A stretch of 63,683 bases of DNA, the filler included, from Parasitella parasitica NRRL 2501 (taxonomy: Eukaryota; Fungi; Mucoromycota): the NCBI GenBank assembly GCA_025201805.1. It is 4 parts of 4 records of this genome, joined end to end, with 100 filler letters (N's around TTAATTAATTAA, not from the genome) between each part and the next. Parts side by side here need not be neighbours in the genome. Positions count along the whole stretch, not along the records: positions 1 to 7,967 come from MU619302.1; 3 more parts are not named here. One strand, given 5' to 3'. Within the stretch, counting starts at the first letter, position 1. Each line of letters begins with the position of its first letter. The notes below the pieces were generated by a model. The model worked only from the letters and a program-made list of their open reading frames with translations, had not been told where the DNA came from and searched no databases. A program made the translations under genes and the position numbers. This document shows positions 565-34,184 of this stretch, in pieces.

Positions 565-1256
565 GGTGAACCTTTGGTGAAATGTCTTCCTTGAGCGATG
601 CCACGGTGGTAAGTCATATCAAAGTTCCCATCCGTTGGTCACTCCTCAGGATCATTCTCATTCAAACTATTAACCTCCTGGTCTTTCTTCACTGTTATCC
701 ATTGTCATTTTTACCTTCATTAGTAGTTAAGTGTTCTTAAGAAGGGTTTTTATACTGTTCTTCTCTTTTTCTTGAAATTAGGCTTTGCTCATATCGAGTG
801 CCCATAAAATTTCTTTATTAATAAAAACAAATCTTAAACTGAGCTAAGCGAGCTTTTACATATATTGTCAGATGTAGAATTTAATAGTAGGTAACTAGCA
901 AGTATAATATGGAGGAAAAACACGTGATATACACTATGCAATGTTTGGGCAAATGTTAGATAAGAGAGAATATAATAGGTTTTGATTAACAGAATAAAGA
1001 TGATGTTTATTTAATAAATTTTATGTTATATTTATAATAATGGTAAACTATTTCCAGAAGTTACCATGGTTTTGTATTTGTCTATCTTGGTTTCTAGAAA
1101 TTGCTATCTATTTATAATATAAGTAAGCTTATGTTTCTTGAACTTTCTGGAAAGAGGTACTCTTGGCTTGAACTTGCGTTTGCCCGGCTTGGCCATTGCT
1201 ACCTCCGGAATACCTGTCGAACCAGTGCTGACAATATAGAAGGATTACATACCTTA

Positions 1257-1460
1257 CAGTGTTTTAGTCTAAAAAGAGACGATTGCAAATTTAATTTGAG
1301 ACGATCTGGGCCTGAAAATTAGACAATGCGCAATTTTTTTTAGACGAGTGCAGTAAATAAAATGAGACGAAATGATTTTTTTTTCAAGACGAAGCACTTT
1401 TTTTTCGAGACGAAATAGCTTTTTATTTTAGACAAAGTAACTTTATTTGAGACGATACAA
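1257..1460 (+). repeat. Left terminal region with 9 phased AGAC(G/A)A motifs
   Basis: Motifs start at 1277, 1299, 1321, 1342, 1365, 1387, 1408, 1430 and 1450 (20-23 bp spacing); mirrored in the right arm. Confidence 0.8.
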
Positions 1461-1472
1461 TTAATTGTATGG

Positions 1473-1784
1473 TTATCTCAGTCCTATTTCTCTGTTGATA
1501 CATCTTTCCCAGGAGGCTTCTGAGTGTCTAACCCAGCCTTGACAATCGCTGACAGTAACTGTCTGGCAGGCCTCAGCGATACGAGGCGTAAGCTTGTTCT
1601 CCTTATCCAATAGGTTTCTTTTAATATTACTTTTAATTTTCGCCTGATACTCTTCTATAGAATGCAAGAAAGGGGAGTACAGCGGCATAAATAAAGGCTT
1701 ATAACCTCTTCTGTTTATAGCTTCCACAACAAAACGAGAGTGATGAATTCTACAATTGTCCATAGCGATGAAAAGGCCTTTCTT
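1473..1784 (-). pseudogene. IS630/Tc1-type DDE transposase C-terminal fragment (left arm)
   Basis: KKGLFIAMDNCRIHH...MPLYSPFLHSIEE carries the second D and the E motif of DDE_3-type transposases; 5'-truncated at the 51-bp array. Confidence 0.85.
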
Positions 1785-2175
1785 GGCTAAAACACATGAA
1801 GGGCGGATATAATCTTGAAGCCTGCAGTCTACACAAGCTAAAACACATGAAGGGCGGATATAATCTTGAAGCCTGCAGTCTACACAAGCAAAAACATATG
1901 AAGGGCGGATATAATTTTGAAGCCTGCAGTCTACACAGGCTAAAACACATGAAGGGCGGATATAATCTTGAAGCCTGAAACCTACACAGGCTAAAACACA
2001 TGAAGGGCGGATATAATCTTGAAGACTACAACCTACACAAGCAAAAACACATGAAGAGCGGATATAATCTTGAAGCCTGCAGTCTACACAGGCTAAAACA
2101 CATGAAGGGCGGATATAATTTTGAAGCCTGCAACCTACACAGGCTAAAATACATGAAGGGCGGATATAATCTTGA
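1785..2175 (+). repeat. 51-bp tandem array, about 7.7 units
   Basis: Unit GGCTAAAACACATGAAGGGCGGATATAATCTTGAAGCCTGCAGTCTACACA; ATGs recur at 1796, 1847, 1898, 1949, 2000, 2051, 2102 and 2153. Confidence 0.95.
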
Positions 2176-4075
2176 GGAGACCTGTCGTTTTACCTCGTTC
2201 TATGAACAGATGCACCTCTCCAAAGTTTGTACCGTTGATACGTTTTTTCAGTCCTGTATTCTATGAATAACACCTTTGTCTTTGCTAAGGCAGTACTTTT
2301 TTGAATATCGAAGAGGTCGTCTTAGTTTACGAGTCCTGTATGTACGACTTTATTTAAAAACAGTTTCACATTTTGGCAACCCTGTCCCTCTACAAATCTG
2401 TGACTGCTCTTAAAATGCGCTCTGCAGAACGTGTAGAAGACATAAAAAAAAGCAAACATGAAAAGACTAAAAACTTACTTTTTATTTCTTTTTTCTTTAA
2501 AAAAAAAAAAACTTGCTTTTTACATATAAGAAAAAAATGAGCGTAGTTACCTTTATTCACCTGTTATACACCTGCCATGTTTGCAAGACTGCCACATAAA
2601 GAGACAAGACAAGACTCAGAGAGCATTTATCTGAGAAAGAAGGTAAAATTTCGTTTTTCTTTTGTGGCACCTATTTTGGCGTTCAAACCACATCGAATGA
2701 ACAATTTTGTTTTTGGTTTGTACACCTTTATTTTTGTCTTCCCCTTATACGCGTTTTAGAAACGAATTGGCGTGCATTTTTTTTTTGTTTTTTTTTTGGT
2801 TTGCAAACAAAAGAAAAATTGTCCGAACCCGGTATTAATGTAAAACTTAAATACCGACTAGCTTCTTACGTATTTTCTATTTTTATATTATTATGCAGAT
2901 ATCGCCATTGAAGCCCCAAAGCCTGGGAAACGAGCAGTGGATAAGAGGTATGTTAATTGCTGACCATTTCTGATTACAGTTTTGCTTTTTGTTTTTTCTT
3001 TTCTTTTTTTTTTAGTATTGTGTTCATCAAGTCGTCTGAATTAAATGAATATACCAAACAAGGAGCAGTCATCATCAGCCGGTATGCTTGTCCGGGATGC
3101 AATGGCAACTTTCATGACTTGGATGGCTTAAAAATCCATGTTGATACAGAACATTGTGGTGAGTACAACTGTCCAGGCGACAGGCCACCTTACACAAAAA
3201 CTGTACTGACAACACTCTAATATAGCATACGCAGATGAAGACTACAATACAATGGCAAGATGAATTTCATTCAAATGCTCCAAAAACCCCATTATTCACA
3301 AGAAATAAATTATAGGCAAGTGCCCCTTTACCACCAACCATAATGCCTCCCATTGCAAACATTCTCAATACCGATGACAAAGACGAGATGATCACGATTA
3401 AAAAAGCAAAGACAACAGCCGAAGCAATCACCAGACTTTATGGAATTCACTCAAGCAGTGATCATGAAAGTAGTAGTAACAGCAGCACAAGTAGCCAGTC
3501 CAAAATGATCGAAGGTGTTTTGAACAGTATTAACTTGAAAGCCTACACCATGTTCCCAAATACAAAAGATGAATGTTACTCTATTTCGACAGAAGTTCAG
3601 TTGCCCCGAATCATAATGGCATGTGAAGAGAGAGGAATAAATGTTGTACCTTGTGTCAGCCCTGAAAACAACAACAATAACAACAGCAAAATCAATGACA
3701 GCAAAACTAAAATAGAAGTCAACAACGATTACATCCAGTATCTTATCTCTGCTAGCAAAATCAATACGACACCCTTGTTGACCGACAAATATACAGAAAT
3801 CACTGAAATTCAGTTGGAGCTGTTGAACGAAGATTGGAATTTCGGCTTTCATCTACGTGCAGTATGTGCCCAACTTCTTGCAGGATGCCTGTTGGTGGAA
3901 AAAAACGAAGTCTTGCTAGTCAATTGTATTGAACTGTACAGTCGCTCAAAACATCAAGACATTCACTCTGAACGCTTTAATGGCGTATTTTCCAACTCAA
4001 GTGCCCCCACAGGTGACGAAATTTACGAAACAATCAATATCTGTAATATTGATTTGGACAACTCGCACAAACTTA

Positions 4076-5740
4076 CAGTAGGTGGATTAATGGTCCGGAT
4101 GTTTTGCAAAATTCGCTGAAACAAGATGTAGATCATGAACAAATTGTCCAATCATTACGAAATTAACGTCATTCAAGAGAGAAAATAGTCCTTAATATAC
4201 TATAAAGATTTTATTTTGATTGGTCAACGGAGATCGAAATAATTTGGAACTAAAATTCTTGTGTGCATCCGGACCATTTTTCAGGGTACTCAAACGTAAT
4301 TGGAAGCTCATGAAATCTCATGGATTTCTTTACCGAAACAGTCACAACTGATTAGTCATCAGTACAGAAGATATAAAAACTGTTTNNNNNNNNNNNNNNN
4401 NNNNNNNNNNNNNNNNNNNNNNNNNNNNNNNNNNNNNNNNNNNNNNNNNNNNNNNNNNNNNNNNNNNNNNNNNNNNNNNNNNNNNNNNNNNNNNNNNNNN
4501 NNNNNNNNNNNNNNNNNNNNNNNNNNNNNNNNNNNNNNNNNNNNNNNNNNNNNNNNNNNNNNNNNNNNNNNNNNNNNNNNNNNNNNNNNNNNNNNNNNNN
4601 NNNNNNNNNNNNNNNNNNNNNNNNNNNNNNNNNNNNNNNNNNNNNNNNNNNNNNNNNNNNNNNNNNNNNNNNNNNNNNNNNNNNNNNNNNNNNNNNNNNN
4701 NNNNNNNNNNNNNNNNNNNNNNNNNNNNNNNNNNNNNNNNNNNNNNNNNNNNNNNNNNNNNNNNNNNNNNNNNNNNNNNNNNNNNNNNNNNNNNNNNNNN
4801 NNNNNNNNNNNNNNNNNNNNNNNNNNNNNNNNNNNNNNNNNNNNNNNNNNNNNNNNNNNNNNNNNNNNNNNNNNNNNNNNNNNNNNNNNNNNNNNNNNNN
4901 NNNNNNNNNNNNNNNNNNNNNNNNNNNNNNNNNNNNNNNNNNNNNNNNNNNNNNNNNNNNNNNNNNNNNNNNNNNNNNNNNNNNNNNNNNNNNNNNNNNN
5001 NNNNNNNNNNNNNNNNNNNNNNNNNNNNNNNNNNNNNNNNNNNNNNNNNNNNNNNNNNNNNNNNNNNNNNNNNNNNNNNNNNNNNNNNNNNNNNNNNNNN
5101 NNNNNNNNNNNNNNNNNNNNNNNNNNNNNNNNNNNNNNNNNNNNNNNNNNNNNNNNNNNNNNNNNNNNNNNNNNNNNNNNNNNNNNNNNNNNNNNNNNNN
5201 NNNNNNNNNNNNNNNNNNNNNNNNNNNNNNNNNNNNNNNNNNNNNNNNNNNNNNNNNNNNTTTAATGTTGATTGGACTTATAGCTGGCCACCTCAGAGCC
5301 CGGACCTAAACCCTATTGAACACGTCTGGCACCATCTAAAATTAAAATTGAGCTCATATCCCACCAAGGCTAGAGGAGTACATGAATTGTGGGAGAGAGT
5401 AGAAGAACAATGGGCTACGTTTACCAAAGAAGATTGCCAACGATATATTGATAGCATGCCTGCAAGAATTGAGGCAGTAATCAAAGCTAAAGGTGGTCAT
5501 ACTAACTACTAAAGTGATTTTATAAGCACCCTGAAAAATGGTCCGGATGCACACATAAATTTTAACCCCAAATTATTTCAACCTCAGTTGACCAATCAAA
5601 ATAAAAAAAAATTTATTTTATTAAATTTTATTTGCTCTCTTCAATGACGTTGGTTTCATGTTGATCGGATAACTTGATCATAATCTACATCTTGTTTTAG
5701 CGAATTTTGAAAAACATCCGGACCATTAATCCACCTACTG
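4076..5740 (+). mobile_element. Tc1 transposon, about 1.66 kb, imperfect TIRs of about 210 bp, TA target-site duplication
   Basis: TA|CAGTAGGTGGATTAATGGTCCGGATG ... CATCCGGACCATTAATCCACCTACTG|TA; inner and outer ATGGTCCGGATG repeats give an IR/DR layout; the middle lies in an N gap. Confidence 0.92.
5261..5512 (+). CDS. Tc1 transposase C-terminus (5' part in gap)
   Basis: WPPQSPDLNPIEHVWHHLK...IDSMPARIEAVIKAKGGHTNY*. Confidence 0.92.
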   Translation, partial: FNVDWTYSWPPQSPDLNPIEHVWHHLKLKLSSYPTKARGVHELWERVEEQWATFTKEDCQRYIDSMPARIEAVIKAKGGHTNY

Positions 5741-6793
5741 TATTATCGGCAGTAACATCTTCAGCGGCCTCGTCACATCTAGTTTGCGCCTGGACTCTAA
5801 AAACCTGGAACCCGAGCTTGGTCCTTCCACGCACCACTTCCATCCAACCGCCACCACCAAGCTGTTTGTTTCTTCTAGCTCAATCAAAAAAGCAAATGCA
5901 CTTTTAGTCAAGAAAGCAACACAAATCAACAACTTTGACAAGTTTTCACAACTCAGGCAGCTTCGTTCAAACTTTACAATTCCCACCACCTACTGTTTTA
6001 GCAGATGCTCATCAAGATTCACAGACAACGTACACATGAGACCATACACAGTATTTACTGCGTTTTGTGCAGAAGAGGGTGATGAGTTTAGCGATGTAAA
6101 GCTTGGATCAAGTATTATGAGATTTATGGCTGCAGTGGTGTTCAACCAAGAAAGAACGTTTAGTTGCAAACAGCTTGCGTTGATTGCCCCGCCTGTTGAA
6201 AAGAAAACTCATGTCTATCTGCAATACAAAAAAATCTTGGAGCTCGGCTCTGTTAATGACACAATCACAATCTTTGGGAATTTAGCCCTCGAAAACATTT
6301 TGTTTGGCATTGCAGAAAAGATCACTCCACCTCTCAAAGAGCTGAACAACAAGGCTGCCAAAAAGATTCTACAGAAAATAAAATACCTGCATTGATGATT
6401 GTTACCGATCTCTCTTAAATAGCATATTTATCACACCTTATATTTTTATGTTTTTCTTCTTTAATTCATTGTAGTATGTTGTATTGCGTGTCAGATCCTG
6501 CGCCAATAGATTGTAGGGCTGTATACTAAATATTTTGATTTTGCGCCACTTAGCACTTGCTGAGTACATCATCTGCGGGTGGTTGAGTCAGTAAACTAAA
6601 GGCATGGTTTTACTTTCCCAAGAGTCTTCTCTTATAATAGCATTAGCTAGTCGACAGACAATTTCTACCAGATATTCTTGTCTTTCATACAAGATTCCTG
6701 TTGTTTGCTTTATTTTCTACCTCTCCTTTCCCCCCCCAGATCTTTCTTGCTAGCATTCCTTTTTTTTTTTCGATGGAAATACAATTCAGAGTT

Positions 6794-6993
6794 TAGGTTG
6801 TAGGCTTCATGATTATATCCGCCCTTCATGTATTTTAGCCTGTGTAGACTGCAGGCTTCAAAATTATATCCGCTCTTCATGTGTTTTTGCTTGTGTAGAC
6901 TGCAGGCTTCAAGATTATATCCGCCCTTCATGTGTTTTAGCTTGTGTAGACTGCAGGCTTCAAGATTATATCCGCCCTTCATGTGTTTTAGCC
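6794..6993 (-). repeat. Inverted 51-bp tandem array, about 3.9 units
   Basis: Reverse complement of the 1785-2175 unit. Confidence 0.95.
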
Positions 6994-7305
6994 AAGAAAG
7001 GCCTTTTCATCGCTATGGACAATTGTAGAATTCATCACTCTCGTTTTGTTGTGGAAGCTATAAACAGAAGAGGTTATAAGCCTTTATTTATGCCGCTGTA
7101 CTCCCCTTTCTTGCATTCTATAGAAGAGTATCAGGCGAAAATTAAAAGTAATATTAAAAGAAACCTATTGGATAAGGAGAACAAGCTTACGCCTCGTATC
7201 GCTGAGGCCTGCCAGACAGTTACTGTCAGCGATTGTCAAGGCTGGGTTAGACACTCAGAAGCCTCCTGGGAAAGATGTATCAACAGAGAAATAGGACTGA
7301 GATAA
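6994..7305 (+). pseudogene. IS630/Tc1-type DDE transposase C-terminal fragment (right arm)
   Basis: Same 96-aa translation as ORF 1473-1763. Confidence 0.85.
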
Positions 7306-7967
7306 CCATACAATTAATTGTATCGTCTCAAATAAAGTTACTTTGTCTAAAATAAAAAGCTATTTCGTCTCGAAAAAAAAGTGCTTCGTCTTGAAAAAAA
7401 AATCATTTCGTCTCATTTTATTTACTGCACTCGTCTAAAAAAAATTGCGCATCGTCTAATTTTCAGGCCCAGATCGTCTCAAATTAAATTTGCAATCGTC
7501 TCTTTTTAGACTAAAACACTGTATTTTAAATGTTTATAAGATAGGCAATTAAATCTGAGCCAATGAGAGAACTAGGGAATCAGACTTGGAACACTACGTA
7601 TGTCAATATAAATTAAATGGAGCTTACAAGGTTCAATAAATCGAACTCCTCAAGTTCAAACTATGTTCTAGGTATATACTTTATTGCTATTTTATCACTG
7701 ATGATGCGAATTACTGGCAGTCTTTCACACATCTTATTTGAATTAGTAAGACATTTCTTTATTAAGAACCGTGTCCTTGAGAACAACATTGAACATGACA
7801 AATATCACCATTAACATTCAACATATAAAGACAATTGTACACCTTTGTGCTTCTTATGAACCACAATCGTTACTGCTTTCCCATGAAGCCTATCTAAATT
7901 ATTGGAGACAATCCAGTTACTGCATTAGTAACATGAAATATACAGATTATATTTTATATAAATACAT

Positions 7968-15624: not shown

Positions 15625-16040
15625 GGATTAAAAAAGATAATAAAAACCAAATGTTAACGAGATACAAAAACTTAAAGATACTTTATTTAAGATCGAAATT
15701 GCAACGGCTATTTATACTTTTTACAGCTACATCAATTTATGGTGACTTATTTAGATTATTGATTGACAAGACTAATTCACAGTGACAATCTACTTGACAG
15801 GGTACGATATGAGGTTATACAACAAGGGCTACACGTCTTTGATCTGACAGTGCCTTAACCTTTATCCTGGTGCTCAGATCTGTGTTACTTGTTGCAGGAA
15901 TAACCTTCTTGATTTGAAACAGAGACTTTATTCTCCAATTTACACAAGCGTATCGCATCACATCACTGGACAATCTTCAATCTTCAATCTTCAATTGAAG
16001 TACATTACCATGATCTACTGTCTATAGTTATGGCAGATCA
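15625..16040 (+). repeat. Dispersed repeat of about 400 bp (unclassified TE/LTR-like)
   Basis: Diverged inverted copy at about 35275-35771; 3' part also at 1-56. Confidence 0.7.
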
Positions 16041-31967: not shown

Positions 31968-33851
31968 CTATTGGGGATTTATCATCAGCTCAGGCTTAAC
32001 CCAATGATCGTAATCGTCAGAAGATAGGTAATCTAGGGAAAGAACAGCTTCTTTCAAAGTTGTTCCCTCGTTATGAGCCTTTTTGGCACACTTGGCAGCT
32101 TTGTCGTATCCAATGACAGGGTTCAATGAGGTGACCAACATAAGAGACTATGAAGCACGTATTAGATACCGCCAGCTTTACGAGTCGACGTAACACTCAC
32201 TCTGTTCATAATCGACTTGATATGCTCGCGATTAGCAACAATGCCAACAACGCAGTTATCTTTGAATGAACGACATACATCACTCAACAACTTGATTGAT
32301 TGAAGCACGTTCTTAATAATGACAGGCTTGAATACATTCAGCTATTTTGGTAAAGGATTAAAGCCCGTGTGTACCGGAATCTTTACTTTTCATTTATACT
32401 ACCTCAAATTGGCCATAGCTTCCAGAGATGGTTACAGTTGTGTGGTTACCCATAACTTGAGCGCAAACCATTGTCAAGGCCTCGCACTGAGTGGGGTTAA
32501 CTTTACCAGGCATGATAGAAGATCCAGGCTCGTTTTCGGGTAGACTCAACTCGCCTAGACCACAACGAGGGCCAGATCCCAAGTAACGGATGTCATTTCC
32601 AATTTTCATTAATGAAACAGCAACTGTATTAAGTGCACCCGAGCACTCGACCATGGCATCGTTGCTAGCAAGTGCTTCAAACTATATCAGGTTGATGAAC
32701 CGTCCATTCAAAAAAAAAAAAAAATCTCGGCCAAGAACACTTTTACCTTGTTTGGTGCCGTCTCAAAGGCGTAACCAGTTGATTCAGAAACAGCCTTTGC
32801 GATATTTACGTCAAACCCCTTGTGAGTGTTAAGACCAGTTCCTACAGCAGTTCCGCCTTGAGCCAAGCGAGATAATCTGGGTAAAGTAGCTTGAACACGC
32901 TCAATAGCATACGTCAGTTGTTGAACATAGCCTGAAAATTCTTGTCCCAGGGTCAATGGAGTGGCATCCTGAAGATGCGTTCGGCCAATTTTAATAATGT
33001 CTTGGAATTCATCTGATTTGACTTGCAAGGCATCACGCAGCTGAGTCAACGCAGGAATGAGATCAGTGTTGGTTTCTACTACAGCTGCAATGTGCATTGC
33101 GGTTGGAAAGCTTTGACAAAAATCAGGGTCAAAAACGACACTACTGAACAATGTACGTACGTGTCGTTGGAAGATTGACTCATGTTTACATGGTCATTAG
33201 GATGGACTGGTGTCTTGCTCCCGAGCTTACCTCCCAAAATTTCAATTGCCCTGTTTGAGATAACCTAAGATGCCCCGTGAGCGATTAATGAATTTTACCC
33301 AGTTCAATTGCCGAGATTTCATGCAACTAATCAATACCTCGTTGACATTCATACTAGACATTACCAACAAGGAAATAAGAATGCTTGATACAAAACAACT
33401 CTCTCAAGACACACTTACTGAGTTTGAGTACCTGAACCTGTTTGCCAGACAACCAAAGGGAACTGATCGTCGTGTTTCCCTGCAATTACCTTGGAGGAAA
33501 ATCTTGTTAACACCGTGCAACAGTTTAATTCAAGCAACATACCTCATCGGCAGCTTGCTGGATGGCTTCAGAGATTTTGGCATCCAGTTTATATTCAAGG
33601 TTGACTTTGGCAGCAGCTTTTTTGAGGATGCCAAATGCTTTGATTAAAGCAGAGGGCATACGCTCACTAGGACCACCAATTTTAAAGTTTTCAAGAGATC
33701 TAATTTAAATGGGTCAGCAAAGGGGGGAGGGGGAGGGCAAACGCGTATTGCGGGGGAGAGGTTACCTTTGAGTTTGAGCACCCCAATACACATTAGCTGG
33801 TACCTTTAAATCACCAAAAGTATCACTCTCAATACGGTATTCTGTAGCCAT
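31968..33851 (-). CDS. FUM1: Fumarate hydratase class II, many short introns
   Basis: [13 protein letters not shown]...[18 protein letters not shown], signature [11 protein letters not shown], ends PELMINPQ*. Confidence 0.96.
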
Positions 33852-34184
33852 TATATGTAAAAAAAAGTCAGTTGATCTTGGGGATTAGATTGCGAAAGAG
33901 ATGCAATCGGAATGATTTGAAATAAAAGAGAAGATGTAAAATGCTCTTCCAACGTGACTCTGGTTGCCATCTGATGTACGATATTGTTGCTACCTTGATA
34001 CGAGAGTGTACTTATTCCGGAAAATCATGCAAAATGGTCAAATTGCTCGTGGTACAAGGATTTCCTAATATCCAATCAGAGTCGTTGGTCCAACAGAGAC
34101 AATGAATCGCTCTACAGAGAGTCGTTCTACATGTTAACTACAACTACCTTTTCCTCAGTCAAAACAAGGGGTAAAGACCAAGTA

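Follow-up and report, generated by a model that had tools for sequence, protein, structure and literature searches.

A probable non-autonomous Tc1/IS630 foldback transposon carrying a zinc-finger gene in Parasitella parasitica and other Mucorales

The stretch of DNA analyzed here, referred to as the window, comprises 63,683 nucleotides (filler included) from the fungus Parasitella parasitica NRRL 2501 and contains, at positions 1257–7521, two long inverted arms that enclose a C2H2 zinc-finger gene, hereafter the cargo. The locus lies at the beginning of contig C66 (172 kb) in the 32.8-Mb assembly. A repeat search delineated an inverted repeat of 733 nt with 99% identity (1255–1987 and 6791–7523), which includes a TA dinucleotide at either end; without the TA, the arms proper span 1257–1987 and 6791–7521 and are inverted copies of each other. 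The left boundary reads ...ACATACCT-TA-CAGTG... and the right boundary ...CACTG-TA-TTTTAAATG..., the DNA outside the TA being unrelated between the two sides. At both arm ends, the terminus CAGTGTTTTAGTC directly follows the TA (the right arm reads ...GACTAAAACACTG), and these two termini are the only ones in the window when up to three mismatches in 25 are allowed. Each arm also carries the motif GAGACGA five times, at a spacing of ~21–22 bp or multiples thereof, against 0.29 occurrences expected for the whole window.

Both arms hold a 96-codon open frame that points outward and matches Pfam DDE_3 (E = 4.9e-07). Counted directly on the translation, the distance from D2 to E37 of this stub corresponds to the DD34E spacing, and only the C-terminal third of a transposase is represented. 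The match to relatives in the same genome (65–76% identical) begins exactly where the stub meets a 51-bp tandem array, at 1784/1785 in the left arm and 6993/6994 in the right arm; thus, the array has taken the place of the 5' two-thirds of the transposase gene, at one and the same nucleotide in each arm. The original prediction, made from the sequence of this locus, had described the arms as inverted Tc1-like 3' ends with an outward stub, a common array breakpoint, and TA flanks, and both the arm comparison and the DDE_3 match bear this out. The arms have the build expected of a foldback element, i.e., long inverted repeats (731–919 bp) with tandem subrepeats inside, namely the 51-bp arrays and the ~21-bp phased motifs. 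Their terminal repeats start with CAGT, as in the full-length Tc1/IS630 relative L011, which displays CAGGATTTTAGTC at both ends. The complete transposase of that family is missing, and in its place is a stub of 96–100 codons with the 51-bp array upstream. A composite transposon has two ends of its own in each arm, and the arms found here lack inner ends; the likeness to a bacterial composite transposon that had been proposed is better replaced by a likeness to foldback elements, which have long terminal inverted repeats (TIRs).

Compared in register from the outer ends, the outermost 640 bp of the two arms differ at a single position, A at 1325 versus G at 7453, which had already been spotted and is now found to be the sole mismatch over this length. 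Because the copy of the element in Rhizopus delemar (see below) has G at the position matching 1325, A is the derived state. Mismatches build up further in, within the array. Array units 1 and 2 are the same in both arms, the innermost variant unit is common to both, and unit 3 of the right array resembles unit 3 or 6 of the left; the inverted repeat therefore takes in the entire array, and on the right this array is a shorter form of the left one. Past unit 2, the identity between arms drops sharply, which fits a recent copying tract running from the array outward to the terminus. The near-identity of the arms had been read as evidence of recent duplication; it gives no date, however, and gene conversion explains it equally well.

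The gene between the arms begins with a finger-like exon 1 (~2537–2642), followed by a finger exon (~3015–3158) that aligns at 3083–3157 with the second C2H2 finger of the cargo family, and by a main open reading frame (ORF) in two pieces, 3343–4075 and 5743–6395, that together make up a long last exon. The zinc-finger exon 3083–3157 and the main ORF belong to one gene family. The spliced zinc-finger gene that had been predicted between the arms is a member of this family, but the copy in the window is broken. Exon 1 contains a TAA at 2597–2599 where the copies in R. delemar and in the Logan contigs have TAT, and the main ORF is split by a nested Tc1-like element. The premature TAA and the nested insertion make the window cargo a pseudogene. 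The same protein is encoded by an intact ORF of 461 amino acids in two external contigs (L088 and L089).

The nested element, which is unrelated to the outer one, contains the assembly gap of the locus, an N run of 875 positions (4386–5260). Its full copy on contig C179 measures 1902 bp and is 98–99% identical; the window keeps positions 1–312 and 1421–1902 of that copy in the correct order and orientation, from which the true gap is ~1108 bp rather than 875. When the nested element and one TA are removed, ORF 3343–4075 is in frame with 5743–6395, and the two pieces meet end to end in an alignment of 13 sequences. The corresponding ORF halves abut in paralogs (e.g., 33581–33949 and then 33953–34600 on C116), and the uninterrupted site with a single TA is present in five external contigs (L084, L085, L088, L089, and L091), the first of which comes from JGI sample 3300046255 and is 99.6–100% identical. 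These intact sites and the paralogs show that the scaffold join is right and that the nested insertion is specific to the window copy. The features of the locus are collected in Table 1.

Table 1. Features of the arms, arrays, cargo, and nested insertion, by position in the window
Feature	Position	Strand	Remarks
TA target dinucleotide, left end	1255..1256	.	TA before all five termini in four genomes
Left-arm terminal region, with terminus CAGTGTTTTAGTC and five phased GAGACGA motifs	1257..1472	+	Inverted copy of a Tc1-like 3' TIR/untranslated region
Left-arm DD34E Tc1/IS630 transposase, last ~100 codons	1473..1784	-	Stop codon at 1473-1475; outward
Left 51-bp tandem array, 7.7 units	1785..2175	.	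Only locus in the genome
Internal cargo segment, C2H2 zinc-finger / predicted AAG-fold family gene	2176..6790	+	
Nested Tc1-like element, 217-bp TIRs	4076..5740	+	TA duplication at 4074-4075 and 5741-5742
Right 51-bp array, inverted, 3.8-4 units	6791..6993	.	
Right-arm transposase 3' fragment, outward	6994..7305	+	Match to relatives; arm comparison
Right-arm terminal region, ending ...GACTAAAACACTG	7306..7521	-	Terminus and motifs
TA, right end	7522..7523	.	

External copies of the element came to light when the second half of the cargo ORF was used as a query and the matching contigs were compared with the window. At 90% identity or more, the cargo protein clusters with proteins from Parasitella, Mucor saturninus, R. 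delemar, and Rhizopus microsporus, together with the intact 461-residue ORFs of the Logan contigs. In R. delemar, one contig (L090) consists of 568 bp of unrelated flank, a TA, the terminus, the full left arm (615 bp), 1.6 array units, and cargo up to window position 3710, with identities of 97.9% in the arm and 95% in the cargo; a second contig (L091) spans cargo without the nested element and continues through the right array into the first part of the right stub (97.7–99%). In R. microsporus, a 19-kb contig (L087) that also bears START and SNF2 genes contains cargo from window position 3888 onward, two array units, the stub, ...GACTAAAACACTG, a TA, and a new flank (88.7–97.9%). The M. saturninus copy, on a 115-kb contig (L086), lies between a BET gene and other genes and comprises cargo, array, Tc1 stub, terminus, and TA, with the right terminus at 15961, the left terminus at 6671, and identities of 87–99%; its cargo is interrupted by other insertions. 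A Logan contig (L088) covers the last unit of the left array, the whole cargo, and the right array at ~95% identity. A 64-bp stretch of the terminal region with three CGTC units (7437–7500 and 1278–1341) is found in the arms of P. parasitica and R. delemar and is missing from the copies in R. microsporus and M. saturninus.

Across these copies, the junction between stub and array is unbroken on all right-hand sides and in the left-hand copy of R. delemar; the fusion is thus older than the spread. Five termini from four genomes are all preceded by TA and adjoin five different flanks. The same ends and the same cargo therefore occur at different sites, as in Pack-type elements, when L086, L087, and L090 are set against the window, that is, in other species only. 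The original prediction of a mobile, non-autonomous, Pack-type gene carrier is upheld by these shared junctions with differing flanks in other genera. Copies with different flanks had been anticipated within the genome; they exist in Rhizopus and Mucor, and none was found in this genome.

The degree of identity between copies was compared with that of host genes. Segment identities between element copies range from 80 to 100%, with 92–100% in the stub and ORF and 93–98% in non-coding DNA. Two host genes beside the element served as controls: the chaperonin gene TCP1, adjacent to the Mucor copy, shows 78% identity between M. saturninus and Parasitella, and an SNF2-family gene adjacent to the R. 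microsporus copy matches the Parasitella gene at 64%. With 88–100% for the element against 64–78% for host genes, the unit must have moved, and moved between genera, as vertical descent cannot give this pattern. Contamination does not explain the copies in L086 and L087 because both sit among host genes. Judged by these sequence comparisons, the element has inserted independently in several genomes and has crossed genus boundaries, which amounts to horizontal transfer among Mucorales. The near-identity across Parasitella, Rhizopus, and Mucor gives a specific instance of horizontal transfer among early-diverging fungi that can be dated.

Taken together, we consider it quite probable that 1257–7521 is a non-autonomous long-TIR, or foldback, transposon of the Tc1/IS630 (DD34E) superfamily that carries a gene and has spread horizontally. 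In this interpretation, both ends derive from the 3' end of the parent element, with its terminus, its array of motifs that putatively bind transposase, and a dead remnant of ~100 transposase codons. Each end meets a 51-bp array at an identical breakpoint, and a complete C2H2 gene of predicted AAG-like fold lies in between. Two identical ends can serve a transposase just as well as a left/right TIR pair, and a related DD34E Tc1-like transposase acting in trans could excise the unit and reinsert it at TA sites. The second arm may have arisen by copying that began in the array and proceeded outward to a transposase-cleaved terminus, through template switching or through fold-back priming on inverted arrays already present; gene conversion between arms, bounded by the end of homology, is an equally possible origin. 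As for the route between hosts, the fusion parasitism of Parasitella may have provided it. This fungus is a fusion parasite in which the transfer of nuclei between species is studied as a laboratory model (PMC4807231).

Several observations weigh against the interpretation as a transposon that spread between genera. Within the contigs of this genome, there is no second copy of the arm, array, or cargo DNA, and no paralogous empty site for the composite. The original prediction had listed the lack of a second copy among the signs that the two arms are chance neighbors; this is how matters stand within this genome alone, and the copies in other genera overturn it. The empty site that had been expected was found neither in this genome nor in JGI metagenome contigs, where the 26-mer of the terminus and the predicted empty site gave 0 matches. 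No autonomous partner was found either: the nearest transposases in this genome are at most 70% identical in amino acid sequence, and a word-indexed search of 5.8 billion proteins returned no transposase match above 73%. A transposase of R. delemar (L092) was considered as the autonomous partner and rejected, being only 69% identical and having other termini. Six external copies were compared in all, and both long arms were seen on one contiguous sequence in the window only. Of the external copies, that of R. microsporus is 5'-truncated, and the R. delemar arms lie on two small contigs that could conceivably be contamination. In M. saturninus, the left end shares just 28 bp with the arm before 1.27 kb of unrelated DNA follows (L086, 6671–7971). 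Finally, TA flanks say little in a genome so rich in A and T.

The M. saturninus left end, with its 28-bp TIR, may represent an older one-armed form or a rearrangement. The window copy, for its part, is a relic, as attested by the nonsense codon in exon 1, the nested Tc1-like insertion, and the lack of a matching transposase in the genome. An exact look-up of the 96-residue stub gave no record. Elsewhere in the genome, a cargo-family fragment with 43% identity and one stop (C6:427292–427775) lies at most 70 bp from an opposite-strand fragment of a Tc1 transposase; it may be a decayed relative of the composite.

The cargo ORF appears constrained. Among element copies, it is 98.3% conserved versus ~93% for non-coding DNA, i.e., about three times better, and the ratio of nonsynonymous to synonymous substitution rates (dN/dS) is 0.44, which is weak evidence given that it comes from 24 substitutions. 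The two ORF pieces were treated separately in this calculation, and the ORF halves and exons were searched apart. A profile search recovered at least 1473 clusters of cargo-family proteins at 50% identity; those members that bear a name are all hypothetical proteins from Mucoromycota. The family has a common layout: C2H2 fingers at the N-terminus, then a core, then a helical domain at the C-terminus. By sequence, the cargo protein matched C2H2 fingers only in Pfam and PDB, and finger-like leads only in the ESM Atlas.

Structural modeling suggests what the core may be. A model of the core domain built from 61 sequences (predicted local distance difference test, 93.6; cargo-family models m8dd521b0ddf9 and m957a690cb67f) was aligned to human alkyladenine DNA glycosylase (AAG) chain 1ewn_A with a VIA-align Z of 10.9 over 168/200 residues and a root-mean-square deviation of 3.9. 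A second AAG chain scored Z 9.7, the next unrelated fold only Z 3.9, and Foldseek gave an E-value of 5e-3. The core is thus predicted to have the AAG fold, and membership of the AAG family by sequence, i.e., a Pfam or PDB profile match, was not found. Within the core, E68, D77, and P223 are invariant, and N65, Y70, R72, H79, and E81 nearly so; the resulting E-x-Y...D-x-H pattern recalls the AAG active site, to which it may correspond. Two other assignments were considered and rejected. A tyrosine or serine recombinase, for which conserved R/H/Y or S/R residues would speak, does not fit the residue spacing or the AAG-like fold of the model, and a DDE transposase would require an RNase H-like fold, which was not found. 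The search exposes a large, uncharacterized protein family restricted to Mucoromycota, with a predicted AAG-like fold and no Pfam family.

At least 19 matches to the cargo gene, with 25–45% amino acid identity, represent paralogs in this genome; many look element-like, and no donor locus was identified. Several paralogs have flanking inverted repeats or arrays of 11–12-bp units of their own, namely those on C116 (L066/L078), C75 (L076), C64 (L077), C14 (L079), C333 (L070), C5 (L080), and C1 (L081). The repeats around paralogs are often bounded by N gaps. On C116, the arms measure 428 bp, are 100% identical, and include the 5' finger exons. Two contigs of 2318 bp, C332 and C333 (L071 and L070), are mutual reverse complements that hold the same paralog; the assembly is therefore redundant at these repeats. 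Arrays on C75 and C14 share the motif AAGCCAAAAAAAA with the large array that lies near a family member in Absidia (L082). Sporodiniella has plain tandem copies of the family, and an ENA contig (L093) contains a 50%-identical relative of the cargo with neither arms nor arrays. The 51-bp arrays of the window may likewise go with the cargo family and not with the Tc1 portion.

These paralogs raise the question of what is mobile. A different reading, which we regard as unlikely, takes the zinc-finger/AAG-fold gene and its inverted arrays as a mobile or self-maintaining module in its own right, with the Tc1 stubs as secondary additions that turned it into a chimera. In such a case, the arrays would be bound by the cargo protein, and a Tc1 transposase would not be the only thing on which mobility depends. 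It would account for the paralogs flanked by inverted repeats and short-unit arrays, for the AAGCCAAAAAAAA motif shared with the Absidia array, for the sheer size of the family (1473 clusters), and for the constraint on the ORF among element copies. However, each outer junction is a canonical Tc1 terminus beside a TA, no transposase-like fold was found in the cargo protein (its best match is a DNA glycosylase), some family members are plain tandem genes or are free of flanking repeats, and target-site duplications were not found around the paralogs. A broader proposal, which we hold to be doubtful, is that zinc-finger/AAG-fold proteins, far from being passive passengers, form the functional core of an unrecognized class of selfish, array-flanked elements of Mucoromycota, of which the present copy would have borrowed Tc1 ends and would spread across genera. 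Put forward jointly with it, and just as tentatively, is the idea that a sequence-specific, DNA-binding, glycosylase-like protein would recognize the arrays of its own arms, with spread through fusion parasitism as a plausible route.

The inverted arrangement of one transposon end is not limited to the window. Transposase matches less than 10 kb apart on one contig form 18 inverted and 6 direct pairs in this genome (binomial p = 0.011). At C128:46182–52771 (L017/L016), arms of 2377 bp are 99.9% identical, and at C29:15851–25491 (L031/L032), arms of at least 3160 bp are 100% identical. In both cases, the two ends are the same ('left') end, with Tc1-type termini after TA and differing flanks, and each arm has a full transposase ORF of 471–486 amino acids that points inward. 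No internal second terminus was found in either, whereas the ordinary relative L011 does show one. A third case, C125:66181–69426 (L012), has at 1279–2127 a 246-nt inverted copy of the 3' coding region in place of the 5' part, 98% identical and 203 nt apart from the original, which makes it a separate instance of the rearrangement on a smaller scale. In these elements, an inverted copy of one end has therefore repeatedly taken the place of the other, and a genome-wide habit of forming 'same-end' long-TIR Tc1-like elements is a testable notion.

Such recurrence also lends something to the view that the arms were made in place, by inverted segmental duplication or by two neighboring insertions followed by conversion, and that only a one-armed ancestor ever moved. 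The M. saturninus left TIR of 28 bp instead of a long arm would fit this scenario, as would the drop in identity beyond array unit 2, which a tract of conversion or copying should leave. We nonetheless deem it highly improbable: R. delemar L090 has a long left arm with the same stub/array junction and a different flank, which places the two-armed form at a second site in another genus, and the arms of the window stop exactly at the terminus with non-homologous flanks beyond. An assembly or scaffolding artefact, in which the arms or the sides of the gap were misjoined, is suggested by the N gap of estimated length between near-identical arms at a contig start, in an assembly with numerous repeat-bounded gaps, but is next to impossible given that the gap sides correspond to both halves of a single 1.9-kb element, correctly ordered and oriented, that the split ORF is in frame and contiguous in paralogs and in four external contigs, that each arm is contiguous with unique cargo and unique flank, and that both arm/array/cargo junctions recur in independent assemblies.

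The DNA around the element consists of dispersed repeats, apart from 1241–1256 and 7522–7701. On the left (flank 1–853), the segment 560–853 has a 99% identical copy on C274, and an ORF at 46–564 has no Pfam match; the adjoining 861–1240 has copies at 97–98% on C266, C52, and C60. On the right, 7702–7967 belongs to a repeat family of at least 40 copies.

Among known systems, the gene-carrying long-TIR transposon described here most readily invites comparison with Pack-type elements (Pack-MULE and Pack-CACTA), in which transposon ends likewise surround a gene other than a transposase, no transposase is encoded, and copies occupy different sites. In contrast to these, it carries a whole constrained gene instead of gene fragments, has a very low copy number, and is found across genera. 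Foldback and other long-TIR elements (FB and Galileo of Drosophila, Tc4 of Caenorhabditis elegans) share the long arms with tandem repeats, the unique middle, and arms kept nearly identical; their arms differ from those in the window, which are made of a truncated Tc1-like 3' end, a stub, and a 51-bp array, with a TA target and a CAGTG terminus. No paper in the collection searched mentions Mucorales together with foldback elements. In Tn5 and Tn10, inverted copies similar to insertion sequences bracket the cargo and only the outer ends are used, whereas the arms here are incomplete, with no inner end and no working transposase. Internally deleted Tc1/mariner derivatives and MITEs (miniature inverted-repeat transposable elements) also keep the termini and the TA target, have lost the transposase, and need a relative to move; unlike them, the element is far from miniature (~4.6 kb without the nested insertion), takes both ends from the same (3') end, and carries a gene. 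At the protein level, the predicted fold of the core is that of AAG/MPG, from which the cargo differs by the lack of a sequence match, by its added C2H2 fingers and C-terminal helical domain, and by a multi-copy, fast-evolving family restricted to Mucoromycota. Gene-carrying DNA transposons have been reported mostly among MULE, CACTA, Helitron, and the fungal Starships, and gene carriage has rarely been reported for the Tc1/IS630 superfamily. A Tc1-type element with two same ends and a whole constrained gene would thus extend gene carriage to the most widespread superfamily of cut-and-paste transposons.

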